DNA from: Guillardia theta CCMP2712
Lineage: Eukaryota > Protista > Cryptophyta
Direction of reading: 5' to 3'
NCBI RefSeq assembly: GCF_000315625.1
Contig: NW_005434611.1
Span: forward strand, 425,649-464,478
Length of the DNA: 38,830 nucleotides
Numbering within the stretch: position 1 is the first letter of the stretch; each line of letters begins with the position of its first letter. Made by a program: the position numbers and the translations under genes. Shown piece after piece: positions 4,951-34,516 of this stretch. Below the pieces are notes generated by a model. The model was not told where the DNA came from. It made no database searches and saw nothing but the letters and a program-made list of their open reading frames with translations.

Positions 4951-4987
4951 CGAGCGAATGGCGTGAGGATGACACCCAAGAGACTAA

Positions 4988-5308
<321 letters not shown>

Positions 5309-10609: not shown

Positions 10610-13600
10610 TCAGGGAGGTCGCGGGAGATGCACCTGATAGTGGTTGGTCCGCACGTTGAGGATGCGGACGAATCTCGAGCCCTGCTCCTGCTGGGAGTGA
10701 GCTGGGGGACAAGCAGCAGAGCGAAGAGTAAAGCGGGGAGGAGGAGGAGGAGGAGGAGGAGGAGGAGGAGGAGGAGGAGGAGGAGGCAGGAGGATGAAGA
10801 TGAGGGTGAGGAAAAGGCAGGAGGAGGGAGAGGAGGACAAGTCTCACTCGGTTTCTGTCGTAGATGAATTCAGGGCGGATGGTTCGAGGATCGACAAGTC
10901 GCGTGAGATCACCTGCTCACCCCCTTCAGCTCCTCCTCGTGCTCCTGTATCTTCCTCCTCCACCTCCTCCACCAACACCACCACTTCCTTCCCCCGCTCC
11001 TCCTCCTCCTCCTCCTCCTCCTCTCCTCCTCCTCCTCCTCCTCCTCTCTTCTCGTCTCCTCTTCAGGTTCACCTTTCTTCGCCAAGAAGTCCTGGAGCTC
11101 TCGACGAGCTGCTGGGATCCAGCTGGGGATTTCCTTCATGACGAACGTGTCCTCGTCATTCACCGTCTCTCTGGTGAACCCAACGCTACAGCCAGAATAA
11201 GCCAGAGNNNNNNNNNNNNNNNNNNNNNNNNNNNNNNNNNNNNNNNNNNNNNNNNNNNNNNNNNNNNNNNNNNNNNNNNNNNNNNNNNNNNNNNNNNNNN
11301 NNNNNNNAGGAGGAGGAGGAGGAGGAGGAGGAGGAGGAGGAGGAGGAGGAGCACTTGCACCTTGCCATCAGGTCGCAACCTCCCTCCTTCTTCCCCACTC
11401 GCCGCTGAAAACCAGCGTTCCCTGCTCGAATGCTGCGAAACTTGTGGTCGTCCCGACTGCACATGCGTCAGCCGAGTAAACGATGGGTAGGCAGAGGAAG
11501 TCGAGGATGAGAAGTATGGACGAGGGAGGGAGGGAGTGAGTGAGAAAAGGGAGGAGGAGGAGGAGGAGGAGGAGGAGGAGGAGGAGGAGGAGGAGGAGGA
11601 TGAGGATGAGGAGGAGGATGAGGAGGGGGGGGGGGGGGAGGGGGGGGGTTAGAGCCAGCAGGTCTTGACCTGTCTAGGATATTGTTCAAGTACAGGAGGA
11701 CGGTGTCCACTGCCTCCCGAGCATCTTCCGAGCAAGAGCTCTTCTCCTCCAGCTCCTTGAGAGCTGGGGCCACGCTCCTGCCCCTGCATCAGTCTCCTCC
11801 TGCCCCTCCTCCTCGTTCAACCTCTTCACGTGCTCCTCGTCTTCCGGGCTCACGTCCTGCATCCTCCTTGAGCCTTCAGCGATGAGCTCCAGCGATTCAG
11901 TCTTGATGACCTGCCGTGCGATTTAGCTCAACGAGCTCTTCTTTACATGCTCCCCCTGCCGTCCCCTCACCCACCCGCTTCCTCCTCCTCCCTCTCCTTT
12001 CTCTTCTCCTCTCCTCGTCTCCAAGCTCATCTAGTCTTCCGCGATCTCTATCCCCCCTCCTTACTCCCTCCCCTCCATCCTCCCTGCTGCAGCTCACCTG
12101 CAGTCGGATCTTGTAGATGCGGCAGAGGGCATCGAGTTCGAGCTCGCCGAGGGGCATGAAGAACTTTTTCCCGCTGTCCTCCTGCTCCTCGAGCAGCGAC
12201 TTCATGTAGAGCTCAACCAGCTCCTCGTAGTCCACCAGCGACGGGTCTGCTCCCCCTAGCTGGACCTGTTGGTTCAGATCCACCACGACGCTCTGGAGGG
12301 AGGGAGGGAGGACGAAGAAATCCTCCAGCCCGAAGAGCAGGTCACAGTCGACGCTCAGCCAGAGCTGTAGCTGATTGAGCACGGCCTCACGGTACCCGCC
12401 ATCCTTCCTCATCAGCTCCACCGCGTCTCGCCTGAACTCCCCGGCACTCGCTGCCAGCGCAGGCTCCTCGTCCACCTGAGGAGGGAAGGATGGATGGAAG
12501 ATTCTTCTCGTCAGCAGAGGAGGCTACAAGAGGTTGAGGGTACGAGAGGAGGAGGAGGGTACGCGGAGGAGTTCACAGGAGGAGGACACAGATGGAGTAG
12601 GGTGCGGGAGGAGGAGGTGGTGGAGGGTACAGGAGGAGGAGGGTACAGGAGGAGGAGGGTACAGGAGGAGGAGCATACAGGAGGGTGAAGGGCGAGGGTT
12701 CACCTTCAAGCTCGGGTAGTACTTGAGTAGGGAGCTGAGCCCCAACCAAACAGCGTGCATCATGCAGTTGCCGTCGTCAGGTACGTCGGTGAAGAAGCTC
12801 CGCCATTTCACCCCCGTCGAGGCCTCGAAGTCTGCGGGAGCCACTGGCTCCTTGATCGACTCGATGTGCTGCTTCCTCGCCTCTTCCTTCTTCGCCTTCT
12901 CCTCCTCGTCCTGGTGCCTTCTAAGGCGTTCGGCTCGCTCGCACCCTCCCCATCCTCCGTTGAGGGCGAACAAAGTGTCATTCCCCCGGTACGCGACAAC
13001 TCCCACCGCCCAGTCCGTGAAGAGCAGGCGAGCGTTGAAGGGGAGGAGCTGGCGGAACTGGAAGGAGGCCTGGCAGGAGCTGACCTGGTCGGCCGAGGAG
13101 GAGTAGAGGTGCGCGTTCCACTTGTCCAGGTAGAGAGGAGAACGGGGAGGATCGACCACGAGGAAGAAGTTCGACAGACTGCTGAGGCTCTCTGGCTGCC
13201 CGTCCCCGAAGCTGACGGAGGCGAGGGGGGAGGGGGCGACCTGCCACTGCCTGAGGCTCCCGTCCTTGTCGAAGCAGGAGGTCTCGATGACAACCTCCGA
13301 GGGAGTCGAGGAGGCCAGCAGGAGGAGGTCAGCTGGGAAGTGCTGCATCTTGTTCACCCTCACGATGTCCCCGCAGCGGAGCTCTCGTCGCCCCTTCCGC
13401 TCCCAGACGTTCTTGCTGGTGTCCAACACCTCCACCTCCTCGTCCTTGTTCACATCGCGCTTGTCCTCCTCCTCCCCCCCCCCCTCCTCCTCCTGATCTT
13501 TCGGCTTCAGCATGTCAATCCTCTTCTTCTCTCCCAATCCCAGCACGCGCTTCAGCTGCTCGAGAGCTGCTCCGAAGAGCAACTTCATCCTCTCCAGCCC

Positions 13601-14503
13601 CTTCGAGTCCTCAGCTCCTCCCAGCCCCACGTCGCTAGGCCTGGCTGACGTCAGCTCAGCCAAGCACACACCATCCTTGTCTCCTTCCTTCAGTACCATC
13701 CTGTTCAACGAGAGCACTTCCCCACCGTCCTCGAGCACAGCCCACATGACCACCCCGGACTCGTAGTCACCGAACAGCAGGCGGCAGGCCAACTTCGTCC
13801 CGTCCTTGCTCTGCATCGTCTGAGTCGCCCAGGCCCAAGCAGGGACTCGCGCGTTGGAGGTGACGAGGAAGGTTCGGAGAGCGTCTGTCTCCATCTCCTC
13901 GTCGTACGTCTCGTTGAGGTAAGAGAGCTGAGGGCACAGGGAGTGAAGGCTCAGAGGGCAGAGCAGCTTCCACACCATCTCCTTGCTCGCCTTCAGCGTC
14001 TCACTCAACTGAAGGATCCCCGGGCGTGTCGCCATCCAGTCCTCGTCGCACAGAACAAACTTCACATCCCCCGGCCCAGGGCATGCCAGGTAGCCCCGGA
14101 CATTCCCCCTGACTTCGTCTAGGTGTTTGAACATCAAACTGCACCCGTCCTCTTGCGCAGCAGTCTCTCGCTTGTTGCCCGTCTCGTGCTTCTGGACCTG
14201 ACTGGATCCCTTCAAGAGAGACGCCTCATCCTCCTCCGTCGCTGCTGCCTCCATTCCCCCTCTCAAAACCAGTCTCGCTCTTCCCTCAAAAGACCATCCC
14301 CTGCCTCTCATCAACGGCCAACTTACTCCCTTCAGGCCTCCTCCACCCATCAACCATCCTTGCCCCCCTGCTCTCCCTACCCCTCCTACCCCTCCTACCC
14401 CTCCTACCCCTCCTGCTCCTCCTGCTCCTCCTGCTCCTCCTGCTCCTCGCCCCTCTCCCACCATCGCCATCAACAGAACGGCCGCCGGGATTCCACACCT
14501 CAT
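10610..14503 (-). CDS. OTU-family deubiquitinase with inserted PUB domain, degenerate P4-ATPase actuator domain and leader ending LVLRGG
   Basis: OTU motifs: DVPDDGNCMMHAV (Cys 12764-12766), FRRDAVELM, LGELELDALCRIYKIRLQV, RILNVRTNHY (His 10640-10642). PUB motifs: AVDTVLLYLNNIL, KFRSIRAGNAGFQRRV, GGCDLMASVGF. Actuator motifs: RCGDIVRV..FPADLLLLASS..WAVGVVAYRG. The exons join in frame through GT-AG introns; one intron spans an N gap. Confidence 0.75.
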
Positions 14504-14531
14504 CGCATTCGCCACCAAAAACTGCCCTCAT

Positions 14532-14615
14532 CCCCTCTATGACCTCTGGCCTCACCGTGGCACCCGGCCCCGGCCCCTCTATGACCTCTGGCCTCACCGT
14601 GGCACCCGGCCCCGG
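14532..14615. repeat. Perfect 42-bp tandem duplication upstream of the OTU gene
   Basis: CCCCTCTATGACCTCTGGCCTCACCGTGGCACCCGGCCCCGG x2. Confidence 0.9.
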
Positions 14616-15062
14616 CGGCGGCAGCGGCCCGCCGGGCCCGGGGTGGACTCAGCTCCACTGGCCGCGGGCGGCCGGTGGAGCTCACCGGTGCCGCAGTGCC
14701 CGGCTCAGCGGCTCGGAGCTACGCCGGACGGTGGGACCGTGGACATGGTGGAGCAGGGAGGGCCGGTGGAGTCGGACTCGGTGGCTGCACTGACAGGCTG
14801 CACGCGGCGGCACTCCGGCGGCCCGGGCAGTCCGTACGGTCCGACAGTGTGATCGGATCGGCCCGGCCCGGCGTCCGACCCGGCGCAGTCACCGGGCCGC
14901 GGCCCGCGCCGGGCCGGGGGCGGTCCCGGAGTCCGAGCCGACGGCGGACTCCGGGAAGCGGCGCCGGCGGCCGCGCCCGCCCCCCGCCCCCGGGCCCGGC
15001 GGCTGCGCCGGGCCCCGGCCCGCGGCGGCAGGCTCGGAACCGTCAGTGACTCGCGGTCGCAC
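14616..15062. repeat. GC-rich intergenic island rich in CCGG/GGCC/GACTC/GTCAC words
   Basis: The same composition recurs at about 10285-10560, 15620-15880, 17140-17710, 17940-18145, 24470-24830 and 32815-33130. Confidence 0.6.
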
Positions 15063-16013
15063 ACCGATTTTTCCGGGTGACCGTCTGAAAGAGCAAGGAT
15101 AGAGTTGTTAATGCCATGATGGCATCGTATCTTTTCTTCACCGTCAATCATGATAGTCACTAGGCCAGTATGTGAGAGCCTGTTGAAGCACCTGATAGGA
15201 GGAAGCTTCACCTCAGACAATGCCCGGCCAAGTAATCGACGTGGCTCAAGTGCACAGATGCTTAGAGCCTCGGAATGCATCCCTGGAGAGGACAGCAACA
15301 GCTACAATAAGGACGACGTAGGAGAATCATGAAGAAGACAGCAAGAACTTAGGAATGAAGTCGTGGATGGCAGCAGGAGATAAGCGAGACAGCTTATATC
15401 AGTCCACGACAGGACAGCAGATGACACCGTCACGGTGGCAGAATACGGCTACGCTCAAGGGGAGATTGGAAGTATCACCCCTGAAGTCATGGACATGGGA
15501 GAACAAGGGGTCTGATCAAAGAAGTCACCCGGCGGCCGCGCAGGTGTCCGAGGCAGGGTTAACTTAAAAGCCTCCTCGACTGATTGTCCTCGTACTGATT
15601 TTTTAACTTAACTTTGAGTAAAGCGATCCGAGACTCCGATCCGATTGGATCAGCCACTCAGTGGCGGCCGCCAGGCTCCGAGACTCCGACGGCACCATCT
15701 GCGAGACGGTTGATTTCGAACTGTATCGCGTCGGATCGGATGCTATCGGTAAGTTCACAAGTTGACGGGCGTTCCCGGCACACTGACTCGGATGCCGAGT
15801 CAGACTTCCAGCACCATGAACGGGCGCAGCCGCTGCTGAGGCCACTCACTCACCCACTCACAGTGATCGGGACTCGAACTTCACTTGCACGATTCTGAAG
15901 TTCATTACAAAAATGAATGAACACCGATTTGACAGACACAAAATAAGGACACACATAACGACAGAGCAGCAAGCTTGCACTATTCAGCTCCTTGCTTTCC
16001 TTTCTAGTTTTCT

Positions 16014-16439
16014 TCACGCATCATCATAAAATGTGAGGGTATCGTCAGAGCTCTCCATGTACATCTTGATCCATTCTTGGGTAAGGGGTAGTGCGCTTTC
16101 AACCCAAGAAGTTTCCGACGTTCTCCTGCGCTGCTTCGTAGAGCTGAGCTTGGTCTCCCTTGAATCCTCCCGTGTTCGTTTGATTTTCTTTGCTCTGCTT
16201 CTCTTGGGACGGCGATATGGCCAGCGATCGATTCCGAGCTTGCGACAGCTGTGCTTGAGTGCAGTGAGAGATATACCCAGCGCCCGTGCTGCTTTGAATT
16301 GCGGAATCGAGAAAAGTTTCTGCAACGTTGGCATGTCTACAGCTAGAGGACGTCTACCTTTGTAAACAATATGCCCTTGTCCTGACTTTCTTCGCGGGAA
16401 CAAGAGCACGTTCGGAGAGGAAGCAACAGAATCTGTCAT
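16014..16439 (-). CDS. RWP-RK transcription factor (141 aa)
   Basis: LQKLFSIPQFKAARALGISLTALKHSCRKLGIDRWPYRR, preceded by LLFPRRKSGQ. The ATG at 16439 was chosen because the longer ORF runs through a repeat. Confidence 0.9.
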   Translation of the reverse strand: MTDSVASSPNVLLFPRRKSGQGHIVYKGRRPLAVDMPTLQKLFSIPQFKAARALGISLTALKHSCRKLGIDRWPYRRPKRSRAKKIKRTREDSRETKLSSTKQRRRTSETSWVESALPLTQEWIKMYMESSDDTLTFYDDA

Positions 16440-16504
16440 GATGGCGCGGACTGAGTCTGAGTTTGAGGGCCCTTGCAAGGCTGCCTCGGGGAGAACTTGG
16501 AAAA

Positions 16505-16720
16505 GAGGAGGGGAGGATGTAGGATGAAGAGGAGGGGAGGATGTAGGATGAAGAGGGGGGAGGATGTAGGATGAAGAAGAAGGGAGGATGTAGGGTGAAG
16601 AGGAGGAGGGGAGGAGGGAGGATGAAGAGGAGGGGAGGAGGGGAGGATGTAGGGTGAAGTGGAGGAGGATGTAGGAAGAGGAGTAGGAGGAGGATGTAGG
16701 ATGAAGAGGAGGAGGAGGAG
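16505..16720. repeat. Degenerate ~24-bp minisatellite (GAGGATGTAGGATGAAGAGGAGGG)
   Basis: Several imperfect tandem copies upstream of the RWP-RK start. Confidence 0.8.
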
Positions 16721-18146
16721 GAGGGAGGGAGGGGAGCAGGCGAGAGCTGCCAGGTTCAAGGAGCTGATCTCCGAGGGAGGGGATTGGGTTTTTAAAAACG
16801 ATTGTTTTACAGCACACCCTTCATCTCGAAACGACGAGATACCACGAGATTTCAAGAACCTCATGTTCCCGATTTCAAGTTGACTAATATAAACAGTACT
16901 GCAGGGGACGTTAGCTTGATTTGTTTTTAACGGTTGTCACGTTCGCGTCTGTGCGGTGACTAGGGCAGCAACTCTCATATAGGAGCTCCACTAGGCGTCC
17001 TAGCCTGCTGCCCTTATCATTAGGTATTTTACCACAGGACGGCCTCCACTGCCGACGTGACCGAAACTCAGACCGTGACTCGGAAATCTCTTTGTTTTTT
17101 TTTCACATTGACTGTCAACTAAAGAATTTACTCATCTCCCAGCTGGCTGCTCCTGGACCGTCCGGTGAGGCTGCTCAGTCACGGCACAGTCTGACCACAT
17201 GACGGCGACTGCAATCAGTCACGCTCACACCGACTGGTCTCACCGGGTCACAATGAGTCACGGCCGGGCCCGGCGTCCTGACTGTCAGTGTGATGGCTCA
17301 GGGCCCGGGGCGGCCGCTAGTAGCTACGCGGCGGCCCGGCGTCACGTCCCGAGTCCCGGAGTCCGCGGCGCCCGGCCAGGCCTAGTAGGGGGCACCCCGG
17401 GCCGGGCCGGGTCCCGAGCGCGGCGGCCCGGCCCCGGCGGCGGCCGCAAGCGGCCCGGCGGGCCCAGCCCTCAGTCAGGCGTCACTGGCCGTCAGGCTGC
17501 TACCGTCGGACTCCGGCGAAAGTCTGGCCTGCGGCAGGTAGTACGGAAGTACAGTTTGACTTAGGCCGAGAGTCCCTGCTCGCCGATGATCGGATGTACG
17601 CGTGCCCGGCCGGCGGGGTACGGTACTGACTGGCACTCAGGGCGCCGGTCGGATCCGACATTCAAGCCTGGCGTTGTCACGTGACTCTGTGCCATGATGC
17701 CACCGTGACAGAGTACTACAATCTTGATTTGTTAGATCGGACTTGTATTATGCCAAACGGTAACTTGAATGCAGACACTGGCAGTTGACCTCAGCTGCAA
17801 CAACTTGTGACAGTTTTTGCTGGAGTTTGATGCACACGAAACTAGGATCATTCCTGTTGAGGAGCACATGAGAGTTAGCCTTGTGACTGTATGCTAGGAT
17901 GTGCAACCCAAGCAAATATCTGACTGGAACGGCTGGCATCACCGAGCCGCAGTGAGCTGCTGGAGGCGGCCTGATACCGCCCACCGTGACAGAGCCCGGA
18001 GTCAAGTTGCCGAGACGGGCCGCGCCGTCACACTACGAGTATTCGCCGGCGCCGGCCATGACTGTACAGTGACTGGACACTAGGAGTCGATACGATCCAT
18101 CACGAGTATGAGCTTCTTCGAGTGGCGCGGCAGCCCGGGAACTGAG

Positions 18147-20769
18147 TCATCGTTGAACGTGAGCAAGGGCAGTCGCCTTGAAGTCAGTCACGAACGCGAG
18201 AGCCTGGAGAAGGAGTGAGGAGAGAGGAGAGAGGAGAGAGGAGAGAGGAGAGATGTCAAGAAGGGAAAGCAGGAACCGAGCAGACGTGCGAGGAGAAGCG
18301 ATCAACGTTTCAGTCCTTGCTCACCTTGCTGCTCGCACTCGCTGCAAGCTCTTCGTGCTCCTCCAGCTTCAGCGGAGGTCCCAAGGCCTGCGACAGCTGA
18401 GGACGGTGCAGGGCAAGTTCAGTCGCACGTTGACAGCAAGCAGCTCGTCCCGCAAGAGCTTCCTCGCGTATCCTCCGAAAGCTGCTCCCACGACGGCCTC
18501 CTTTCCAGCAGATAACTGATGGATAGGAGTGATGAGCGCGAGCAGGGAAGGTGGAAGAGGGACGGGAGGGGATGAGGGCGGGGGAGGGGAGGGGAAGGTG
18601 AGCAGGTAAGGGAGCGAGGGAGCGAAGGGAATGAAGGAGGGAGAGGGGAGGAACTTCGCCGGGCCTCCTGCCTGTGATTTGAAGAGCTCATTCCTTGCCA
18701 GCAACGTCGCCGTGTAGTCGTTGGTTCCTCCAGCCAGCTACCCCACGAGTGAGGCAGTAGGGGAGGAGCAGCGAGCTCTGACCTGTACGCCTCCTCGCAA
18801 GCGAGCTTCTCTCCGACACTGAAGCACTCGCTGTTGCGCAAGTCAGATCACTTGGCTCCTCTTCATCCCTCACCTGAGCCAGGGCGATCGATGCTCGCGC
18901 GGTCCCATGCCCCACGTCTCCGCTCATCGGCCTCCCATCAGTCTGCCACAACTTGAAGCCAGTGAATCAGAAGCTTCGGTTGCATTGAAGGGCATGAGGA
19001 GGATGAGGAGGAGGAGGAGGAAGGAGGAGGAGGAGGAGTGAGGGGGAGGAGGAGGGGCGAGGGAGGAGGGAGTGGANNNNNNNNNNNNNNNNNNNNNNNN
19101 NNNNNNNNNNNNNNNNNNNNNNNNNNNNNNNNNNNNNNNNNNNNNNNNNNNNNNNNNNNNNNNNNNNNNNNNNNNNAGAGAGGGAGGGGAGGATGGGGAG
19201 GAGGAGAACCATCTCGACATTGTCCGGCAGGTTCAGCGTATGAGAGACGAACAGCATGAAATCCAATAGAGTTTCTCCCTGCCGATCCGTTACAGATCTC
19301 ACCAACCTCTCGCTCCACTCGCTCCTCTCCTCCTTCCGACGCTGCCTCTGGTGCCTCTTAGTAAGCCTTCCACAGTCACCTGATCAGGAAAGCTGACGGA
19401 GACAAGCTTCAAGCTGCTAGCCCATCCCTCGATCCCACCGCTCTCTCCGTTTCGTCCCTGCCATAGCTCGCGGAAGGAGTCGCGGGTCGAGCCGCTCGTG
19501 TGGATCTCAATAGCATCTACTCTGATCAGAAGGTCAGGGAGCTGGCTGCGAGGTGAAGAGGAGGGTACGGGCTGCCTCTCAGGGAGGCGATGAGTTCCTG
19601 CGTGCTGAATGAGATCGAACGAGGGCAGGGGAAGGGGCGGCGGAGGGTGGAGAGGTGAAGTACTTGAGGGGTCCTGACGTAGTTGTTGGCGTGGATGAGC
19701 TGGAGAGGGCAGGAGGAGAGGCATCGCCCACACCCGTAGCATTTCTTCTCGTCCTGCCACCTCCCGTCAGCTGCACGAGGCCCTGACGAGGGTCAGGCGC
19801 ACACCACGCCGCTTTGACTGATGGCGAGGACTGGGCATGTCGCTTCGCAGGGGCGGGGGCAGTCGGCTGGACACAAGCTGGGCCCGACCAAGGCGTCAGG
19901 AGCACGTCCCCGGTCCCTGAGCTGGGCCTCACCTGGGGTCGAAGGCTGCCTTGCGGAAGTGAGGGTCCGCATCATCGTTGATGGATACCATGATCCAGGG
20001 GCGCGCCGGCTGCAGCCATGAGCGCGCCTGCTCCGTCGTCAGCCCATTTCTCGCCAGCCTGAAGCGCCTCGACTCACAGAGGAGTACTCTTGCGCAGCTC
20101 GGATCCCCTCGTCCACCTGTGGGCGTCGATGAGGATGAGCGTGAGAGGTACAAGTTCCCTACGGCAGAGACGATGGAAGGATCAGCTGCACCTGTCAAAG
20201 TGTTGGTTCCAGAGCTCCTCCTGACTGTCCGACATCGTCTTCTCCACCGCCTCTTCTCTTCTGTCCTCCTCCTCCCCTCTTCCCTCTCCATTCCCCCTCC
20301 CTTCCCCAGACTTACAATCAATGCAGTCGACTCCTGCTAAAGTGTACGCAAAGGCCTGAGGGTACAACGTCAGCCTTAGGGCCCTTCTCCTCTCCCATTG
20401 CTCACGATGTTTCTGATCTGAGGGATGTCCTCATTGCTCGCTCCACAGATCAGCTTGATCCACGAGCCCTCCTCCAACCTAACACTCATGTCAACCTGCA
20501 GCGCCGGTCCCTTCTTGAACTAACGCAAGTTGGGGAGGCGAAGCAGCGAAGGGGGAAGGCAAACGTGCGCCATCAGGGATAGCTGTGCTGCATTTTGGTG
20601 CTGTCTTTGGGGTCTTCGTTGAGACTTTGCCAGCACACGTCCTCGTGAGCATTGAGCGGAGGCGACAACATGGTGAAACGCCCAACAACACTTTCTGAAC
20701 CGGGTAGCAACCTGAAAATGAGTCCACGAGGGCGAGGAGGAGAGCAAAGATGATGCAGAGAAGTTTCAT
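18147..20769 (-). CDS. ldpA: LdpA-like 4Fe-4S protein, plastid-targeted, multi-exon
   Basis: WIKLICGASNEDIPQIRNI, AFAYTLAGVDCID, AADPSIV, PWIMVSINDDADPHFRKAAFDP, CPADCPRPCEATCP, CYGCGRC, DAIEIHT, WQTDGRPMSGDVG, AFGGYARKL. Leader is MKLLCIIFALLLALVDS|F. Confidence 0.88.
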
Positions 20770-23659
20770 ATTGCCTGTCATCAACCTCTCAGACACAGTG
20801 TGATGTGAATGATCTTGCGCTCTACTACTGGCTGTATAGCTCCCCACTGCCTGCTACGCCGGGTGCCCTACCGTCTACTAATCTCTCTTTACACAGCATC
20901 CTCAGGGTTCCTCGCTTTCTCTTGATCTATGTCATACCCTCCTCTGTTCATCTCACCTTCCTCACTCCTTCCTCTTCCTATGTTGGCAAACCGACTCTAT
21001 TCTTCGACGAGCTCGCTCCACCAGTCTCCTCCTCACCTTGACCCGCCATTTGCACCGCCCACAACAGTCGCTTCGTTTTTTTTGTGCTTTCTTTCTTTCT
21101 TTTTATCGTAAAACTCCAGGCCGGCCGGGCCTGGACGGTAGTTACTTTACTGAAAGGAAGACTGCCGGGAACTGCCGGGTGCTGCTAGCTAGCAGAACAG
21201 GAGCAACACCAGCATCACAAAACGCAACCAATAAAACACTTTTTAAAAAAAAGTCTTTAGGAACAATAATAAAAGTAATTTAATTCATTACCGCTGCCTT
21301 TGCCCATGTTTGGAGACAGTATCATAGGATAACTAAAACTAATATAGAACTGACATTTCATTACCAAGAATCATACAAATATTTGTAAACCCTTTTGAGC
21401 TTTCTGAGTTACCCGGGGCTGGTACACAACAAACTGGGGGAACAGAAGCGGACCATATGTGAAAGTAACTTATTTCAGATCCTGGCTTCGTAGTAAACTT
21501 GGGGAACAGCCCCTGCAGGAGGCCAGGGGTTGACTTGAGCTTTATAGTGAAGAAACACGGGGAATAATCATAACCCCTACCTCTTTCTGACACACTTGAT
21601 TGGACCCGTGATTGAAGCTTGATACCCTGACTTGACTATATCAGTTCCTAAAACCTTTTGTAAATTCCTCCACCCTACCCCGGCTGTCTGTGCTGATGCT
21701 TTTCTATCACCCCCTTTGGCCACTGTTTTCCCCCAGTTGACCCCCCACCCCCCTCAAAATCATCATGACCCTACCGCCTGTCTGTACCACCCACTTTCTC
21801 AAACAATCTTATACCTCTTTCTACCTTGTGTACAGAAACGCATACTTTCTAAGTGATAACACTATGATAAAATCAATACCCTTCAAACATTCTGTTCACA
21901 CCTCCCCCACTCCCCACAATCTTCACATGCTCGTCGCTCTCTCTCTCAGGGTACCACCCAGGGACCAACGAAAATGTCCCTGGAGGGCAGCTCTGTTATT
22001 CCTCCTATACTACCCCCTACCCCCCTAAAATGAAGTAGTACGGATTCGAAATGACCCCCTTATTTGAGTCAAACTGAACCCTACCCACTGGGAGGAGTCT
22101 GCGCTTACAGCCAGTGCTCCTCTTCCCCAATTGGGACCAAAACATATAAAACTTTGTTTTTCATAATTCCGCTACAGGTTGGCTGGCGTTGTAGGGGCCC
22201 TCAAAGCCCAAGCAGACATCCTTGAGGATTGTATATGTAAACTTAAAGAAAATTGGGCTATCATTGAAGCTTTGGATCAATTGCAGCGCCTTCCTACCAT
22301 CGGACACGCTATTGATAACTTCGTCACAAACCAACTCACATATACCCCTGCATATAAAATTCTGATCATCCTACAAGTGTTTTGAAACGTATATGTATTA
22401 TTCAATGCTACTGAATTGGTTCACAGAGAGTAGGGAAACGTTTTTTAATGAATATTAAAAAATATAGTTTTTCAATAACTTTCTCCAACAAAGCTTTGTA
22501 CCGTCTCTGAAATCTTAAAACGTGGAAGCGTTTTATAGACTGTACCTAAGTTTTCTGATTCCCAAAAGACTGTTTCTGATCCCTATCACTTTGAAGTGTG
22601 CGGTACAAACTAAACCAATTTTGTATGGAGACTTTGGTACTGTGTTCCCAACGATTGACCTTCATAAAACAAATTTAAGTAATCGGAGGGTTGTAACTTG
22701 CCATAAAGGATCTCGAGCACCCACCCCTGATTGTTTGCGATCTGGGGACGGGTACGGAAACTCCTCTGCACACCTCGATTGTGGCAAGTGCTTAAAGTTT
22801 TGTTGTTTTCAATGTTTAGTACCCGTCATCATCTAACCACAATTGATACAAAAGCATGGTGGGGTAGTACAAGACTTTCACAACTTTGAATGTCAATGTG
22901 TCCCAGGCCAAACTTTCAACACGAGGGATAAAAAAATCGATGGGGCATAGCCCACGACCACCCTACCCATTTCATTCATTCTTCGGTACCCACCATTAAC
23001 TTGGACACTGATCTCATGGAAAATAGTTGGGTAGCTAAATACCCACCCTGGTATTTAGCAACTGTGATGAGACTACCCCACCTATCCATTACCACTGGGA
23101 TACAGGGGGGTTAACTGACTGGTCTCATTGCAAACCGACGTCCAAGGGGGTGACGGCACCACCCACCCTCCAATACGCCATTAGGTATTGGAAACACTAC
23201 GGGATCCGACCGCCTGGCCGACCCCCTGAATACGTAAGTCCTGCTGAATCTTAAACAATTGCTTTTATAATCTGCTACAAAATGGAATATAAAAGACAAT
23301 ATAAAGAATTTATATGTAATATAAATGTTTTTCCATGTTTTTTGAAGCTCCTGAGATATTTTCATTGGGCCTGGTAACGGGTGTCAGAAGACTTTTAGGT
23401 TGTAAAACTATTTTATCTCTACAATCCAAGTTTTTGAGAACTCCTTATTCACCCTGACCTCTCCCCCCCTCCGTCACCCTCTACTCTTACCCCGTTTGCA
23501 TCCACGCGCACCACCTGTCCTTGGTCTCCTCTTTCTTGTTTTGCTTTGGCTTTCCCTCCCTCCCTCCGTCTCTTTTGCCTTGTCCTTGTCTTTGTTCATA
23601 TTCCTGTTTCGAGAAATCTACCCTGTTCAATTTATTCCATTCCATCACCGAACGACGAA

Positions 23660-24310
23660 ATGAAAATCTTTGCACTGGCGGTGTTGTTTGCCTTGGCCAT
23701 GCCTGTGACTGCGTTGAACTACCAGAGCGTGCAGCCGGCATACACAGCGCAGGCTTCTGCATACGATATGAATCAGATCCATTCTCTCCCAGTGCCAAAG
23801 AACATGGAGCAGGATTATCGTGAAATGCGCATTGGTACCCCCTACGATGAGGAAGAAATGTACCACGTTGCCCGTGTTGCCTCCATTCGTGGTGGTATGG
23901 GTGAGATTGAAGACTTTGAGAGCGAATACAAGAGCATGAGAATGGGCAATGTCTTCGAGGACAACGAGATGTTTTCAGCTCCACGCGTGGAATCAATGCG
24001 CGGTGGGGCGGCTCCCCACCACACTTCTTCGTTTTACGAGAACCAGTACTCGCAGTATAGAATTGGCTCTGTATTCGAAGATGAGCTTCCTGCTCCCGCA
24101 CCGGCTGGCTTCAAGAGAAGCCTTTCACTCCGTGGAGGAGGAGCTGATGACTTCGAGAAGGAATACCGGGAGATGAGGATGGGCTCCTTGTTCGATGAGA
24201 ACGAGATGGAGGCTCCTCGCATCGATTCTCTCCGTGGTGGTGGTGAGGTCAATTCAAAGGATGTTGAGAAGAGCTATTCGGAACTGCGCATCGGCTCTGT
24301 CTTTGATTAA
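23660..24310 (+). CDS. Signal-peptide repeat polyprotein (216 aa): five YxxxR[IM]Gxx[FY][DE] modules separated by four S[ILM]RGG motifs
   Basis: Intronless ORF from ATG 23660. MKIFALAVLFALAMPVTA is signal-peptide-like. The repeats are conserved as protein but diverged as DNA. Confidence 0.85.
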   Translation: MKIFALAVLFALAMPVTALNYQSVQPAYTAQASAYDMNQIHSLPVPKNMEQDYREMRIGTPYDEEEMYHVARVASIRGGMGEIEDFESEYKSMRMGNVFEDNEMFSAPRVESMRGGAAPHHTSSFYENQYSQYRIGSVFEDELPAPAPAGFKRSLSLRGGGADDFEKEYREMRMGSLFDENEMEAPRIDSLRGGGEVNSKDVEKSYSELRIGSVFD

Positions 24311-27300
24311 TTAGTTACCGCGTGTGATGATTTACATTTCTTTCTTATAATGTTATTGTGTATAGTTAGTAAAACTTGGAAATCAGCCTGCAGAGTATGA
24401 GGTTACAGCGGCTGCGTTCGAGCATCTCAGATTCACGATAGTAACACATTGAGCCACGTATCGAGGATCGGACCGTCCGAGGTTGCGTTCGAGCATGGCA
24501 CTGCGGCACGATCATGATCCTGAGTACTGTGACACACTGGGCCTCGGAGTACGGTCGTGGCAAACTTTCAGTATCGAGGATCGGATCGGACCGTCCTCAC
24601 TGTCATGTTCATTAGGTTTGGTTCTCGCTGTCTCTTCTCGCCGTTTGGCCAGTGCGACAGTGTCAGGGTCAAGCCTCCTCGAAAGTTCCGAGCCCAGTGG
24701 AACTGGGACTCCCGGACTGGCGGGTCCCGAACCGCCGGACCCAGCCCGGCCCGATCACCACACTGACAGCCAGTGACGGTGAGACGCATACCCGGCGTGG
24801 AATCCCCGGGAGCCCGGTTTGTAGCCCCCGGTTTTTCGAAGCCTCGTTTACCGTTTGCGGTAGGGGTGGGGCCGAGCCAGGTCAGGGGTGGGCGGCCAGG
24901 GGGTGGGGCGAAAGTGCGAAGTTTGAGGGGGGATGAGGGGATCCGACCAACAAAGGAGAATTGGTTCGCTTATGAAGGGGGGTAGGGTGGTGATTTGGGG
25001 GTGGGGTACAAACAAAGATTTCAATGCCACCTGGCGAGGGTGCAACTGGTATCAAATTACTACTACCTCTGTCCTGGTATGTCATCGACCCTGGGAAGGG
25101 GTGGGGGCCTTGTTGCCGCCAACGATGGGTGGGGTGGTGCAAGTTTGCCCTGGGGTGGGTGGGGGTAGTCACGGGGGCATGCGGTGAGGGGGACTGGGGG
25201 AAGGGTAGCAAAGGGGATTACACTACCCCCACCCCACTTTTGTTTCACATAACCCCATGAAATGATGGATAAATCACCCGTACTTACCTATGTGATACCA
25301 ACCCCCACTCCTATTAGTACCCCTGCTTCAGGATAAGTCTGTATCCAAGCTTTCGACGCTCATCAGGACCCTACCCCCTAGGCTTACTACAGCCCCACCC
25401 CACTCTACCTTTACCCCACCCCTCCGAGACTTCACTACCTTTCCTCCCAAAGCGTCGCCTTGGAGGACCCCAAGTTTGCCTTCAAGTCAACTCGAAAGAC
25501 CCCTCCGTTTATCACCCCCACCCCTGGATATGGCTCCACTATCCTACCGCTATAAACTATCAGTTCTGTATTCTCTGCAATCAACCCCACCCCCCTCAAC
25601 GACCACCCCTCTTTTGTAATATACACCCCTCCTTTCCCCCTTTTGTACCCCGTCATATCTCGTATCTCAAGAAATTGTACACTACCCACCCATACTTTTG
25701 GTATCCCAACCCCTGAAAGGAGGACCCCACCTCCTAGTGGTGTGACTTGCTATGGCTGCAGGGAAGGAGTGGGAGGGCAACATGCCTCGTCCCCTGCCTC
25801 TTCCTCCTCCCCTCCCTTCCTCTCATCCCCTTGGAGCCAAGGACTATCCTTACAGCTGAACGCCCGACGCCTCTCTTCCTCCCCATCCGAGACTCTCACC
25901 CCTACAGAATCATTTCCTTGCCCCCTTCACCTTACTCCTCGTCGAGCTTTACCTCCATACTTTGTTTCGAACCATCTATCTCTTCTGGTTCCCTTGCGTT
26001 TGTGCTCATCTTGATTAGACTGCTACCTCTCGTTGAGCCTCTTCTACAACAAACTTCAAACACTCGATCTTCGCTTAAATTCAAGAAAGCCAGATACAGA
26101 ACCATTGTTTTATTTCCGGTCAAGTGAAGCGCCTCGCCGCCAGTTCCTTTGGCCGCCATCTCATTTATCTTTTATTGGTTCAAAGATTCAGTTGATTCCT
26201 GGTCAAGTGATCTTGGAGCTTGGAAAGCTGATTGTTTTGTGCTTTTCCGAGATTTTGGTAGATTCTTATCAATGCAGGTATAATCAGCATGCTTGAGGAA
26301 TGTTTGCATGCATGAAAATTGTAGCAGTTTTTGCATCATGTTTGATGTCTTCCTCCAATGCTCTTCTGTTCCTCATCATCTCTGCAGGATGCAAACACTG
26401 GGTTCTTCCAACAATAAGACATAGCGAAGGATCCGGATAACCTGAAGATGGAAATATCCGGGGAAAAACGAAAGCAAGACGCTCCTATGAGCGCTCATGA
26501 CTCAAACATGGAGAGATCTCCTTTTTCACCGGCAAACCGAGATGTACCTTGGCAAACAATCAAGGTGCCAAGGAAGAAAGGCTCGTCAAAGAGTATCATG
26601 TCAGTCACAATCACTCTGGTTGTGCACTCGATAGTTGATACTCTGCAGTGACGAGCTTTACTCCATTCCTGCGGGTGTAGTATCTGCAGCTCCGCCGATT
26701 CAACAGGTCCTCTTGCACCTTGATCTCCTTTTCATGATGTCAGTCATGGCAGGGTTTCGAAACTTCTTCACTCCCCCTCCAAATGAATTTCACCAACGGC
26801 AAAGACTCTCACCTAACCAGTCAGAATGGTGGTGTGAGTGTAGATCTCTTGAACAGGTGGGCTGTGAAGTAGGTTATGATCACATTTCACTAAAACCTGC
26901 TTGTATCAGATACAATGTAAACCAACAAACAATCCAGTCACAAGTAAGATCGTGTCGCCTCTTTTCAGACTTGAGACAGAATAATTTGCGTTGTGTAGAT
27001 GTACATACTTTCGCAATTGGCAGCATATCAGGCTAGTCAGCAGCATCAAGATCCTCTCGTTATGCCGGTACGTATCCCTTCGCTTATTTACCATGACGAT
27101 TGAGCGCTGAGTTGGTAGGGGTGGAACGCGCAGAATTTTCAGATGAATGAGAGAAATCTGAATTTCAATGCTCTTTATCAGGTGAAGAAGTTTGTCAGGA
27201 TTGTTTTTGTTCAGCTGACATGTTGTCATAGGGAGCAGGGAATACCTTAACTGCCACACAGGTCTGGATCTTGATATTTGTGTGTGGAACATTACAACAT

Positions 27301-27415
27301 GTCGCTGAACCTGATGCCTTTCAGAGCATGGGAGGAGTGAATAATGCTTGCAATGGAATGAGCAGCACTAGTCAGGTTGAAGATCTCCTTTTCATGTAGA
27401 GTTGATCCCTGAGCT

Positions 27416-29295
27416 TTGCTGCAGTCATTTGTAGGGATGCAACCTCCCTTCCTCAACCAGAATCTCAATGTAGGAAACTTCAAGCAAGTCTGGCATCAGA
27501 ATGACTCCGTGTGGAACTCATCAAATCAACGCAACCTCCCGATTTTCCCACCAGCCACGTTGAGCATGAATATGAACTTGAATGTCAACAGCGGGGGTTT
27601 GTGGAATGTTCCAATGAATGTGGGAGCCGGGATCAGATTCCATGATCACCAATCGCATCTTCAATCCCAGCCAGTATGTCAACAAGAGAGTCTTCACATC
27701 CCCTCGACATATTCCGAAGTTTGTTCTTCGAACCAGCCTTTGTGTCCTGTCCAGCATGCAAAGACCGGATTTTCGGCCTTCTCTAAGGTGACCAAGATGA
27801 AGAAGCAGAATGGACATCAACAATGTCAAGTTGGTGAGCGGGGAAGCAAGAAGTCAAAACCTCTGTTGAAGCTTACTCGACAGGTAAGAAAATGATTCTC
27901 AGCATGATGTGTCTGATACCTTGTTTTTCTTTTTGCTTCCGACTTCCCTTGCTTCCTTCCTTCCAACCTTCATCGTGCGCTTCATTACCAGTTGTTGCCT
28001 ACATACAAGGGGATCAACAGCAGGTATTTCGTAAGACAGAGCAAAATCCTTGGGCGCAAAAGAATCTACAATGAAGGCTTCGACGATGAGGCTGGCGATT
28101 ACATCGTTCGTGCAGGAGACATCATCAATGAGAGATATCAGATATCAGTGAAGCAAGGGTCAAAGACTCCTATCTTGGGAAAGGGATCGTTCGGTCAAGT
28201 TGTATATGCCTTGGACCTGATCGAAAACTTGGGGGTTGCACTGAAGATCATCAAGAACCAGAAGCATTTTCACGAGCAAGCCAAGACAGAGATCGAGCTG
28301 CTCAAGAAGTTTCTAAGAGTTCCTGTGCCAGACTCGATCCCAATCTCAGAGTCGATATACAACGGGGGAAGATACCTACCTTGCACAGAGTGGGTGGAAT
28401 ATGCAAATGTTGTTAGGATGTTAGATACTTTTATTTTTCGGAATCATCAGTGCCTGGTCTTCGAGCTGCTTCCGATGTCTCTCTACGACCTTTTGAAGTT
28501 GTCCAAGTTCAAGGGCTTCCCCTTGTCTCTCGTCCGGAAGTTCGCGAGGAACATCTTGCACAACCTGGAGGCTCTGCGGGCACCGGAGGTGGATGTTATC
28601 CACTGCGACCTGAAGCCAGAGAACGTGATGCTCATCAAAGCGAACGAGCACAGGATCAAGGTGATCGACTTCGGATCAAGCTGCTCCTCGGGTTACAGAC
28701 CGTTCACGTACATCCAGTCTCGATTCTACAGGTCTCCGGAAGTTCTTCTCTGCCGCTCCTACTCGTATGCAATCGACATGTGGTCATTAGGATGCATCAT
28801 GGTTGAGATGCACACTGGAAGCCCGTTATTCAATGGGAAGAACGAGTACGAGCAGATGCAAAAGGTTCGCTGCTGTTTCCTTCTCTCTCTCATTCCCCCC
28901 CTGTACCTCTCCTCCTTCCTCGTCCTTCTCACTCAGTTCCCTGTGCCAGCCCTGTTGCACTGGATTCCTCCTCACTTTTCTTCTGACAGATCTGCGAGAT
29001 GTTCGGGTTCCCTCCAGACCATATGCTGCAGCAGGCAGGTTCCAAGTCGAAGGTCAAGAACATGTTCCGCAAAGGGAGCAACGGAGGGTGGAGGATGTGT
29101 TGGCCGGGAGAGCGCGAGATTGTTACCAAGTCAAGGATCATGCGTGAGGTCATCAGGAAGCCGAACTCGACAGAGACGGAGCAGACGTACATGCTGCTGG
29201 AGGACTTGCTAGAGAAGATCTTGACTCTCGACCCGGAGGTTCGCTGCACGCCTACTGAGGCTCTGCGTCATCCTTTCTTCACTTCCAATCCGTAG
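27416..29295 (+). CDS. DYRK-family dual-specificity kinase; further 5' exons possibly from about 26448
   Basis: DH box NEGFDDEAGDY, LGKGSFGQVV, VALKIIKN, HCDLKPEN, IDFGSSC, FTYIQSRFYRSPEV, IDMWSLGCI. Intron about 28865-28990. Ends LTLDPEVRCTPTEALRHPFF. Confidence 0.92.
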
Positions 29296-29641
29296 ACGCC
29301 AGAGGGTAAATGAAGAAGGGCAGGGGAGAGGGAGAGGGAGAGGGAGAGGGAGCTCGCGTTGATCTTGAGATGGTTGTAGATACTGGGGACTGATTCCAGC
29401 GCCATTGATGGCGGACGGACAAGGGGGACGAGATGAGGACTTGAAGAGCTGAGGGAAGAGTGAATGGGAGGAGGATAGCTCATGAAGTCGATGTCAAATT
29501 ACAGCCAAAGAGTTGCTATCATTATTCAAAAGTACACCGTCGATTACTCAAGACAAAAAAAAAACAAGATTTTCACAAAATTTTCTTAATTCTGTTGTAA
29601 ATCCGACTCGTCTAGTATCTAACCATCGGCATCGTCTTCTT

Positions 29642-31400
<1,759 letters not shown>

Positions 31401-33153
31401 TGCTTCGGTGGTGTGACGCGGAGATTCGGGGGGTGGGGGTAGTAGCGAACGAAGGCCCGTCGGTGGGTACTCGTCAAATTTTGGAGGGGTGGGTGTGAGG
31501 CTTACAGGGGGTAGGGTAGAGAAAAGAAAGAGGGTGGTTCTCTACTTGTTGCTTGATCCGCGTGTAGAAAACTAGGTAGGGTGGTATAGATTACGATTAC
31601 TACCCGGTTGAACGAGTTCAACAAGGGGGTAGTCAAGTTTGATGGTCATGCTAAGAAAGGGTAGGTTATCACAGTTCCATTAGTGGGTGGATCGACTTGA
31701 ACTGTGGGGGTAGGGGTAGGAATTTGAGACTGGTGGAAGGGGGTGGGGTATGATGATACTTTGAGATCTCAGGTTGAGGTGGGGGGTGGTCGATGAGAGT
31801 TCAAGACTTTCGATCACATTGAGGGGTGGGGTGGTATGAGTCGGCTAGGTGGGACAGATGGGGTAGCATGGGGTAGTGGTGTAGTTTGATAGGGTGGGGT
31901 GGTGCAGAAAGGACATGGTTGGGTTTCCCAATGTACCCTACCGTTTCCACCTAGGCCCCACAATGACTACCCCACCCTCCTAGTGAAATTCGTTCATGAC
32001 CCCACAGAATGGTAGGGTGAACCCTACCCGTGTTCAGTTGTCATCCCATAGATACTATCTGTGACACGAGCTACCCCCTTCGATTGAATCAGTACCCTAC
32101 CCCCCTTTATCAAGCACCCCCACCCTCCTTCACTGCTTCCTACCTCTCATCACCCACATCCCCACTCCAGTACCCTTGTCTCCCTACCACCTATCAACTC
32201 CCCACCCCCCTTGAGGACGAAATTATGAGGTGTCCTCAGTACCCCACCCTATCTAAGATACGGATTGTGAGAGCCTTCCAGAGGGGGTACAATACATGAC
32301 CCACCGAGAAAAAGCCAGTGGTAGTGAGCTATAAAGGTAGGGTGGGGTGGTGATTTGAGTGAGTGGGCTGAATGTGAAGAATGGGGGTCAGTGACCCAGG
32401 GAGGAGGGGAAGGGGGGGGGGAGGGGTTCTTGGATGAGGATAATGACGGGTAGGGTAGGGTGCTCCTACATGTGGAGTATTCTGTACGGGTGGGGTAGCT
32501 TTTCAAATAAAAATAATTTACACATGTCGTAAAATAGAATCTGATGTTTTATACAGTACCGCTAACATTTGAATTTCAATTAATATGTTTTTGAGGAACA
32601 TCGTGGTACAGTTGATAAAGCCAATTAATGAAGGCGTACCAAAACAAATTTGTACCAATTAAATTATATGTACAGGAAATATTACCAGCACGAGACTTGA
32701 AGTACGGAAAGATTAACTACCAGTGCTCACAGTCAGTACTGCAGCAGAACCCTTGTTCCAACGAGAAGCTTCGAGAAGAGAAGCGCCGTCAGCAAAGCCT
32801 GGTCAGCAGTGGGGACGAGGGGCCGGACCCGCCCGGGACAGGCTTCTGAGTGTCCGTCACGGTCAGCCTGCCGCCTGATCATGCCGCAGTGCGGAACTCA
32901 GTGTCGGCCCCCGAACACAGCCCGGCGGGCCGCTGTGGAGCCGGGCCCCGGCGGCGTACTATCGCAGTGACCGACTCCGCCCAGTCGGCGAGACGCGCGG
33001 CCGCCGGGGCCCACCGTCCGATGGGCCACGCCGGGCCCGGGCTCGGGCCCGCCGGTCACTGACCGAGGTCACTAGCCCCGGCTGACTTGAACGGCACCGG
33101 CGGGCGGCGGCCCGGCGGTCAGTGACCCGAACAGATTCATGATGGGATCCAGC

Positions 33154-34516
33154 ATGACGGAGCGACTGTACCTCGAGGACAGCTACAGGTAGAGCAGAGA
33201 GAGGGGAGGGAGCAGAGCAGAGCAGAGCAGAGCAGAGCAGAGCAGAGCAGAGCAGAGCAGAGCAGAGCAGAGCAGAGCAGTGCAGACAGTTCAGTGGAGA
33301 CAGCAGATGCAAGATTTCAGCATAGATACGAGGTCCAGGAGGGAGAGGAGAGTTGGGTCAATGGNNNNNNNNNNNNNNNNNNNNNNNNNNNNNNNNNNNN
33401 NNNNNNNNNNNNNNNNNNNNNNNNNNNNNNNNNNNNNNNNNNNNNNNNNNNNNNNNNNNNNNNNNNNNNNNNNNNNNNNNNNNNNNNNNNNNNNNNNNNN
33501 NNNNNNNNNNNNNNNNNNNNNNNNNNNNNNNNNNNNNNNNNNNNNNNNNNNNNNNNNNNNNNNNNNNNNNNNNNNNNNNNNNNNNNNNNNNNNNNNNNNN
33601 NNNNNNNNNNNNNNNNNNNNNNNNNNNNNNNNNNNNNNNNNNNNNNNNNNNNNNNNNNNNNNNNNNNNNNNNNNNNNNNNNNNNNNNNNNNNNNNNNNNN
33701 NNNNNNNNNNNNNNNNNNNNNNNNNNNNNNNNNNNNNNNNNNNNNNNNNNNNNNNNNNNNNNNNNNNNNNNNNNNNNNNNNNNNNNNNNNNNNNNNNNNN
33801 NNNNNNNNNNNNNNNNNNNNNNNNNNNNNNNNNNNNNNNNNNNNNNNNNNNNNNNNNNNNNNNNNNNNNNNNNNCGTAACCCCTTCCCTCCTCCCCCTTC
33901 TCCTCCTCCTCCTCCTCCTCCTTCCCGTTCCTCTCTCTTCTTCCCTCTTTTTCCCCTTCTTCCCTTCCTCCCCCTCGCTACGCTAATCCTCCAAGCCTCA
34001 CCCCCTTCCCTCTCCCTCTCCCTCTCCCTCTCCCTCTCCCTCTCCCTCTCCCCTCTTCCCTTCCCCTTCCCCCTCCCTCTCCCCTTCCTCCTTTTCCGCC
34101 CTCTCCTTGCACGTCTCTGACTCCTCAAGCAGCGCCTTGTGTCGAGTACATCGGTCAGATCCCCCCGGAGGAGCGAGCTCTTGCCTGCGAGAGGGTCCAG
34201 CAGGAGTGTGCGCGGCTGATCCAGGAGGGTCATGAGGTCCAAGTGATGACTGTGGAGGACCCCTCCTCCCTCCCCGAACTCTGCGGGCCACTTGCTCCTC
34301 CTTCCACGGTGCTCGGAGGCGGCGAGGTGGGAAGAGGAGCTGACAGGGGTGCAGGAGCAGCGGGGCATGCGGCTGGTGAGGGTGGTGGGGAGCTACTGGT
34401 GGTGCCCGTGTGGAGGGACGCATGTGAAGGACGTGAGAGAGATCGGGGAGATCAAGGTGACAGCAATCAAGATCAAGCGAGGAGTTCTCAAGGTCTCCTA
34501 CAACCTCGGAGATTGA
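33154..34516 (+). CDS. alaX: Free-standing alanyl-tRNA editing protein (AlaX-M-like), middle lost in N gap
   Basis: N-terminal MTERLYLEDSY and C-terminal MRLVRVVGSYWWCPCGGTHVKDVREIGEIKVTAIKIKRGVLKVSY (CGGTH motif). The HxxxH motif is not visible and may lie in gap 33365-33874. Confidence 0.8.
33211..33280. repeat. (AGAGC)n microsatellite in AlaX intron 1
   Basis: Direct reading. Confidence 0.95.

Follow-up and report, generated by a model that had tools for sequence, protein, structure and literature searches.

A stretch of 38,830 nucleotides (nt) from the cryptophyte Guillardia theta CCMP2712 (contig NW_005434611.1, positions 425,649 to 464,478 of the forward strand), hereafter the window, carries a short gene for an acidic repeat protein in which the tetrapeptide Φ-R-G-G (where Φ is I, L, M or V) occurs four times, each time between two copies of a second conserved motif. 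The open reading frame (ORF), at 23660-24310 on the plus strand, encodes 216 amino acids (aa) followed by a stop codon, and assembly GCA_000315625.1 has an identical protein annotated, on its scaffold JH993027.1. The gene is strongly expressed and yields a real polyadenylated mRNA without introns, as transcript contigs from three runs (23477-24376, 23532-24386 and 23484-24324) align to it with zero mismatches and zero gaps, and no splice joints were seen across the gene in the RNA reads. The features of the gene are collected in Table 1.

Table 1. Features of the repeat-protein gene, and a putative ORF elsewhere in the window, in window coordinates (UTR, untranslated region; CDS, coding sequence; AF2, AlphaFold2; PPC, periplastid compartment).
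Feature	Position	Strand	Remarks
mRNA, intronless, polyadenylated	23477..24386	+	transcript contigs and raw RNA reads
5' UTR, 183 nt, 74% pyrimidine, no upstream ATG	23477-23659	+	
CDS, 216 aa and stop	23660..24310	+	
Signal peptide, aa 1-18, MKIFALAVLFALAMPVTA then L	23660..23713	+	rule-based reading; layout kept in Hanusia phi
Fast-evolving post-signal segment, aa 19-48	23714..23803	+	Leu at +1, net charge 0, 13% Ser+Thr
Extended core 1, MEQDYREMRIGTPYD	23804..23848	+	regular-expression match in both species; low-confidence AF2 helix aa 49-57
Octamer 1, RVASIRGG, then Met	23873..23896	+	invariant in H. phi
Extended core 2, FESEYKSMRMGNVFE	23915..23959	+	AF2 helix aa 83-94
Octamer 2, RVESMRGG	23984..24007	+	invariant in H. 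phi
Extended core 3, YENQYSQYRIGSVFE	24035..24079	+	regular-expression match
Octamer 3, RSLSLRGG	24116..24139	+	SLRGG same as leader end of ugg-t
Extended core 4, FEKEYREMRMGSLFD	24152..24196	+	AF2 helix aa 162-175
Octamer 4, RIDSLRGG	24218..24241	+	R(-7)...Φ-R-G-G layout as in PPC Ubc8 leader RLIPLRGG
Extended core 5, VEKSYSELRIGSVFD, stop codon directly after	24263..24307	+	AF2 helix aa 199-211
3' UTR, 76 nt; poly(A) added at 24385/24386		+	poly(A) loose ends in raw RNA reads
Putative N-terminal ORF of OTU/PUB gene (context only)	14252..14503	-	hydrophobic start, Gly-rich stretch, RLVLRGG then Met

The N-terminus reads by rule as a cleavable signal peptide, with K2, a hydrophobic stretch of 12 residues (mean Kyte-Doolittle value 2.9) and P-V-T-A before the Leu at +1, and small residues stand at -3 and -1 in both G. 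theta and Hanusia phi, the latter with VSG before the Leu. A scan of the 216 aa found no later hydrophobic segment, and the sequence contains neither a transmembrane segment nor an endoplasmic reticulum (ER)-retention tail. The remainder is built of five 11-aa cores (YREMRIGTPYD, YKSMRMGNVFE, YSQYRIGSVFE, YREMRMGSLFD and YSELRIGSVFD, at aa 53-63, 90-100, 130-140, 169-179 and 206-216) and, between them, four octamers with the consensus R-x-x-S-[ILM]-R-G-G. Each core extends to 15 aa with the pattern Φ-x3-Y-x2-Φ-R-Φ-G-x2-[FY]-[DE] (Φ here being any hydrophobic residue), which as a regular expression matches five of five modules in both species. A preliminary description of this DNA had listed the same cores and octamers, with octamer ends at exactly 23896, 24007, 24139 and 24241, its signal peptide fits by rule in both species, and its last module does end at the core without an RGG, the stop codon following core 5 directly. 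When the mature sequence was shuffled 200,000 times, no shuffle contained at least four RGG or at least two half-cores, and 17 contained at least one octamer.

No DNA tandem repeat was detected at the gene by TRF, the modules are 38-62% identical pairwise, and identical residues are often encoded by different codons, the invariant core Arg, for example, by CGC, AGA, AGA, AGG and CGC in cores 1 to 5; the modules are thus old duplications kept by selection at the protein level. Cores and octamers have in common the tetrad Φ-R-x-G, which recurs every 15-24 aa. That the two might be diverged copies of one unit was considered and rejected, as outside the tetrad their similarity equals the null (-12.7 vs -11.3 +/- 9.3). 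Readings of the repeats as RGG-box RNA-binding elements, YxxΦ sorting signals or FFAT-like motifs were likewise dropped, because the chain would be lumenal or organellar and its RGGs are spaced 35-44 aa apart. The mature part has an isoelectric point (pI) of 4.6-4.7 and a net charge of about -15, lacks Cys and Trp, and contains no N-x-S/T sequons and no S-x-E phosphorylation sites; the sole dibasic pair, K152-R153, lies in the flank of octamer 3, and the module borders are free of dibasic sites. The chain is predicted to be intrinsically disordered, with a pLDDT of 0.39 in the Atlas model and a mean pLDDT of 43.8 in AF2, no predicted strands, and four low-confidence AF2 helices (Table 1), all of which overlap cores.

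A word-index search returned, besides the protein itself, a single relative, an H. phi orthologue of 215 aa from EukProt with 78% identity, and a phmmer search run exhaustively over 1.84 billion representatives contributed just two repeat-inflated chance matches. One of these, a bacterial repeat protein of 3454 aa (P0003), owes its score to 16 repeated stretches and was rejected after inspection of its sequence; the other (P0004), a repeat ORF of 487 aa from a metagenome contig, carries five copies of PHH-SFENQY-Q-R-GSV, a pattern shared with core 3, with single matches of only about 29 bits, and was rejected as chance because it lacks RGG and is not otherwise similar. When metagenomes were scanned with the alignment of the two species, none of the 495 pattern matches was confirmed. 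Pfam and NCBIfam held no family match for the repeat protein, in keeping with the preliminary description, which had recognised no family, and the only weak match, to thiovarsolin (E 0.003), fell far below its cut-off; a sequence search of the PDB returned noise only (E at least 0.055), and the ESM Atlas gave no feature matches, with all structural rows at TM < 0.4 on the model of pLDDT 0.39. From these searches, therefore, the family is restricted to Guillardia and Hanusia as far as is visible. Between the two species the signal peptide differs at 11 of 18 positions, aa 19-48 at 14 of 30 and aa 49-216 at 23 of 168; within the mature region 16 of 81 spacer positions and 7 of 55 core positions have changed, and none of the 32 octamer positions, against 23 of 136 in the remaining mature region (Fisher p=0.008). 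Judged by this pair of sequences the octamer is the most constrained element, and the whole mature chain is constrained too. The constraint on the octamers speaks for the earlier proposal that RGG serves as a separator, of which cleavage, enzyme and compartment are the unproven part; the co-conservation of cores and RGG that it proposed to test is seen in H. phi, in one close orthologue only.

A clue to what the octamers may do comes from proteins of the periplastid compartment (PPC), a cytoplasmic remnant enclosed between membranes 2 and 3 of the plastid. Since ΦRGG is also expected by chance, [ILMV]RGG arising in the window at a rate of about 2.3e-4 per codon position, an independent test was made on published PPC proteins with full sequences and evidence, taken from Appendices S2 and S3 of the ASAFind 2.0 supplement and including the set of Gould et al. 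2006; in that collection ΦRGG stands at the junction between leader and mature protein in six of six G. theta proteins whose PPC location was established with fusions to green fluorescent protein, expressed in the diatom Phaeodactylum tricornutum (PMC12136025). The junctions read RMSLRGG then AGSD in the starch-synthase-like ugg-t, MLRLRGG then GKEKHH in EF-1alpha, ALRLRGG then VDGE in 14-3-3, PLRLRGG then FRGD in RRM1, ALRLRGG then GLPY in CyP, and RLIPLRGG then ANPT in Ubc8. Two further G. theta proteins, assigned to the PPC by homology, show the same arrangement: sCdc48 (CMRLRGG then NV) and PPC ubiquitin (CLRVRGG then MQVFVKTL). The residue after GG in PPC ubiquitin is Met, the first residue of ubiquitin itself, and GKEK in EF-1alpha is the usual Met-trimmed N-terminus; with the Met, a possible original start, that follows GG in the putative OTU ORF, these junctions look as a cleavage site directly after GG would. 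The RGG is also present in PPC proteins of the diatom Thalassiosira pseudonana, namely Der1-1 (FDLRGG), sSec14 (FQIRGG), TrxH (LSLRGG), sCdc48-2 (DIGRGG) and sCdc48 (LSARGG).

About 100 cryptophyte plastid proteins contained 11 ΦRGG strings, three of them at a leader end among the occurrences listed. Two members of this "plastid" set, XP_005839318 (ALRLRGG then S) and XP_005842093 (TLRMRGG then G), combine a leader-end ΦRGG with a non-aromatic +1 residue and may, because of this PPC-type leader, be PPC proteins. A literature search found no description of the motif; two papers by Gould et al. of 2006 lay outside that search, and an earlier description of the ΦRGG junction is thus possible. The ASAFind 2.0 text makes no mention of it (PMC12136025), and the paper on the Toxoplasma plastid ubiquitin-like protein PUBL discusses RGG solely for that protein itself.

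Taking the repeat protein and the leader junctions side by side, a model can be proposed in which the gene product is a PPC-routed precursor that is cut at its four ΦRGG sites by the enzyme that matures PPC presequences, a reading that we hold tentatively and rate as slightly short of probable. The 216-aa precursor would enter the ER by means of its cleavable signal peptide, leaving a chain of five roughly 15-aa amphipathic cores parted by four R-x-x-S-Φ-R-G-G octamers; it would then be routed to the PPC, where the enzyme that trims PPC presequences at ΦRGG would also cut the repeat chain at four places, to release a piece made of the leader and core 1 and acidic peptides of 37, 44, 34 and 22 aa with one core each. 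Several features fit such a route. The N-terminal ER signal peptide expected of PPC proteins is present by the rule-based reading, the first RGG (IRGG) ends at aa 79, that is 61 aa after the signal cut where reference PPC leaders measure 15-64 aa, and the SLRGG of modules 3 and 4 is the leader end of ugg-t. The net charge of aa 19-48 is 0 in G. theta and -1 in H. phi, and an acidic or uncharged leader has been found to be tolerated for import into the PPC, not for import into the stroma. An in-window contrast is offered by the gene of an LdpA-like Fe-S protein (about 18147-20769 on the minus strand, its first exon in ORF 20491-20847 (-), with the Pfam domains LdpA_Fe-S-bd and LdpA_C annotated), whose stromal leader consists of MKLLCIIFALLLALVDS then F and a basic transit peptide rich in Ser, Thr and Lys, with no RGG. 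The secretory-pathway destination of the preliminary description gives way to one that looks more like the PPC than the classical secretory route.

Several observations, however, weigh against this model. The residue at +1 is Leu in both species, where PPC proteins are expected to have none of F, W, Y or L; the PPC training set has no F-like residue at this position, Leu included, ASAFind counts F, W, Y and L as plastid-type, and Leu at +1 is accepted for stromal import in diatoms. The first "leader" would hold a conserved core, unlike ordinary leaders, which evolve fast, and the spacers too are under constraint, diverging by 20% where the leader diverges by 47-61%, as would be expected just as well of a chain that functions uncut. 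Because a single close orthologue exists, the co-conservation of cores and octamers is weakly tested. In the accessible data no cleavage is evident for the repeat protein or for the reference PPC proteins, so that cleavage, in common with the periplastid location, the scissile bond, the enzyme and a function of the peptides, is something that we infer. Toxoplasma PUBL, moreover, is reported to have no need of its upstream RGG and is apparently uncut there.

As to the enzyme, the junctions suggest a scissile bond behind GG, though it could also lie in front of RGG or inside it, and a protease directed at ubiquitin tails, resembling a deubiquitinase (DUB), is one candidate. From the sequences a DUB-type cut after GG, the preference of the preliminary description, is plausible, but canonical DUBs require a ubiquitin fold, which the repeat protein lacks. 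Papain-like viral proteases cut LxGG in extended chains, which makes the chemistry feasible without being evidence for the repeat protein. A cut after GG is further disfavoured by the single N-terminome datum found for an RGG, that of T. pseudonana protein 24761, for which the N-termini RGGCKPDL at position 57 (R57; RGGCKPDLYLVEDDSER, two observations) and GGCKPDL at position 58 (G58; GGCKPDLYLVEDDSER, four observations) were recorded and none after GG (PMC3774753). These ends may point to cuts before or within RGG. The same N-terminome has no entries for the five RGG-bearing diatom PPC proteins, and diatom stromal cleavage sites favour Leu at -2.

The window holds a second gene of relevance to this question, an OTU/PUB gene at 12524-14518 on the minus strand, whose first ORF begins with MRCGIPAAVLLMAMV and continues with a (GGx)n stretch and RLVLRGG, then MEAAATEEDE. 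The annotation calls no gene at this N-terminal ORF and it has no Pfam match; a search with aa 1-260 returned no homologues, not even itself, as Gly-rich words swamped the candidates. If translated, the ORF may provide a PPC-type leader on a Cdc48-binding deubiquitinase, possibly a SELMA-associated enzyme directed at ΦRGG; alternatively, the Met after GG may be the true start codon. A PPC protein "sPUB" is listed for diatoms (PMC12136025). By extension, ΦRGG might serve complex plastids of the red lineage in general as the code for maturation during periplastid import, a ubiquitin-tail mimic cut after GG by a SELMA-associated DUB-like protease for which the signal-peptide-bearing OTU/PUB gene 9 kb upstream would be the candidate, and the repeat protein would then be a natural four-site substrate and the first PPC polyprotein, releasing acidic peptides around the nucleomorph; this wider proposal is speculative, and we consider it unlikely.

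Of the alternatives to a cleaved precursor, the main one is an uncleaved multivalent ligand or scaffold, which we rate as possible but rather unlikely. Here the intact chain would bind partners through nine short motifs (five cores and four octamers) and act as an adaptor, as a buffer or by competition, whether in the PPC or in another compartment, and the octamers could occupy, uncut, the very factor that recognises ΦRGG leader ends. The predicted disorder, with short helices at the cores only (pLDDT 0.39 and 43.8), agrees with such a role, and an intact ligand would explain both the constrained spacers and the regular recurrence of Φ-R-x-G every 15-24 aa. PUBL, apparently uncut at its upstream RGG, is a precedent in its favour, and the two-sticker layout recalls the Rubisco linker PYCO1, with its alternating KWSPRGGS and GTGYNP (PMC10288592). 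However, an arrangement of five cores and four octamers with a core at both ends is the pattern that separators would leave, ΦRGG falls exactly at the ancestral N-terminus boundary of eight unrelated PPC proteins, where it looks like a cut site, and the ligand has no known partner.

The repeat protein could also be an ordinary secretory product outside the PPC, either an acidic repeat protein that is secreted or kept in vesicles, or a precursor of several peptides, like the fungal Kex2-processed repeat proteins, silaffins or silacidins, cut by an endoprotease directed at basic residues, an explanation that we find improbable. A signal peptide with no transmembrane segment, retention tail or sequon would be in order for such a product, as would the modular design ending in a bare core, and the post-signal segment, poor in Ser and Thr and devoid of net positive charge, is unlike known transit peptides. 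Proprotein convertases follow a general rule of basic P6 and P1, with which cleavage behind the second Arg of R-x-x-x-x-R would agree; yet a hydrophobic P2 and a non-basic P4 (A, E, L or D) make a poor site for kexin or furin, and the module borders have no dibasic sites. Because the separator matches the leader-end motif of PPC proteins, an ordinary secretory precursor becomes less likely. Most remote is a cryptophyte pyrenoid linker, which the preliminary description had offered as an alternative: a stromal sticker-spacer protein whose S-Φ-R-G-G would act on red-type Rubisco as S-P-R-G-G does in PYCO1, and to which we give very little credence. The chain is disordered and lineage-restricted with predicted helices about every 37-40 aa, diatoms accept a Leu at +1 such as its own for import into the stroma, cryptophytes are not mentioned in a 2026 review, and S-x-R-G-G is common to it and the small-subunit sticker KWSPRGGS of PYCO1 (PMC10288592). 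This last likeness is probably a coincidence, as PYCO1 cannot do without W476 and the repeat protein contains no Trp at all. Its low pI (4.6-4.7) and net charge of about -15 contrast with the pI of 10.03 of PYCO1 (PMC10288592) and the positive charge of EPYC1, and its leader, unlike stromal ones, is without net positive charge, which passage across the plastid envelope requires.

Comparison with known systems places the proposed PPC precursor between several of them. The bipartite PPC presequences of cryptophytes and diatoms, which depend on SELMA, have the same signal peptide, a non-basic linker of tens of residues and Φ-R-G-G, but in these ΦRGG occurs once, at the leader end, whereas the repeat protein has it four times and internally; what follows the leader in PPC proteins is a recognisable protein of cytosolic type, and what follows here are 15-aa cores, with Leu at +1. 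Polyubiquitin and ubiquitin fusions, which DUBs cut after LRLRGG, likewise consist of head-to-tail units with a ΦRGG tail, and the first RGG of the repeat protein is followed, as in ubiquitin, by Met. However, the repeat protein has no beta-grasp fold (no Pfam or NCBIfam match, predicted disorder), and its octamers match only the last four residues of the tail LRLRGG, with Ser rather than Arg at -4. The ubiquitin-tail analogy of the preliminary description thus gains from the ΦRGG, often LRLRGG, at six of six G. theta PPC junctions and loses for want of a ubiquitin fold before the tails, and the conjugation of released GG ends that it had entertained is not suggested, as the last unit has no GG tail.

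The plastid polyproteins of Euglena (RbcS, LHC) and dinoflagellates are also encoded by a nuclear gene in an alga with a complex plastid, and have an ER-type signal and units parted by a short conserved linker. Their units are folded, known proteins of about 15 kDa (RbcS, LHC, PCP) and their decapeptide linker is excised in the stroma after import; the units of the repeat protein, in contrast, are orphan peptides of 22-44 aa that belong to no family, and its separator is a PPC leader end. Yeast alpha-factor, fungal Kex2-processed repeat proteins and the silaffins and silacidins of diatoms combine a signal peptide, repeated cores and a conserved basic separator, and their last copy ends at the stop, as it does here. 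Unlike these multi-copy secreted precursors, the repeat protein is separated by RxxSΦRGG and not by KR/RR or RxL, and its cores diverge (38-62% identity between modules) while the spacers are conserved; neither KR/RR nor R-x-[KR]-R, the sites of Kex2 and furin, serves to separate the repeats, the single KR being the one in the flank of octamer 3. PYCO1, too, is disordered and built of repeats in which two short motifs alternate, S-x-R-G-G being part of one of them, but it is basic (pI 10.03), has repeats of roughly 80 aa and depends on Trp, whereas the repeat protein is acidic and has none (PMC10288592). By analogy, the repeat protein would work most like the polyproteins of complex-plastid algae, with a resemblance to polyubiquitin processing, and is a member of neither group.

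At 24616-24682, 230 bp downstream of the poly(A) site, several short contigs of high depth run into unrelated sequence, and at 24651 three runs carry a fixed A>T difference; this segment resembles either a dispersed repeat or a small RNA of high abundance. Direct repeats, GCGTTCGAGCAT and ATCGAGGATCGGACCGTCC, lie at 24400-24620. An ORF with an RWP-RK domain (16017-16817, minus strand, E 7e-16), a protein kinase (27992-29209, plus strand, E 7e-39) and an annotated ubiquitin-conjugating enzyme of 147 aa that has no leader (about 29642-31400, minus strand) are neighbours of ordinary kinds, and nothing evident connects them with the repeat protein. The GC content falls from 56-61% in the left 20 kb (1-20000) to 42-50% around the repeat-protein gene and rightward (20000-34000).

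Little is understood of how PPC proteins are recognised and how they lose their presequences, and the lack of an aromatic residue at +1 is the sole discriminator in wide use. A short, abundant, intronless protein with four ΦRGG sites would be a compact natural reporter for whether, at which position and in which compartment cleavage takes place, and a substrate on which candidate enzymes, such as ptDUP-like or OTU/PUB proteins, could be tried. Should the chain prove to be uncut, it would still be a lineage-restricted and highly constrained disordered protein. If it is cut, the repeat protein may be a natural multi-site substrate for the leader-processing enzyme of the periplastid compartment.

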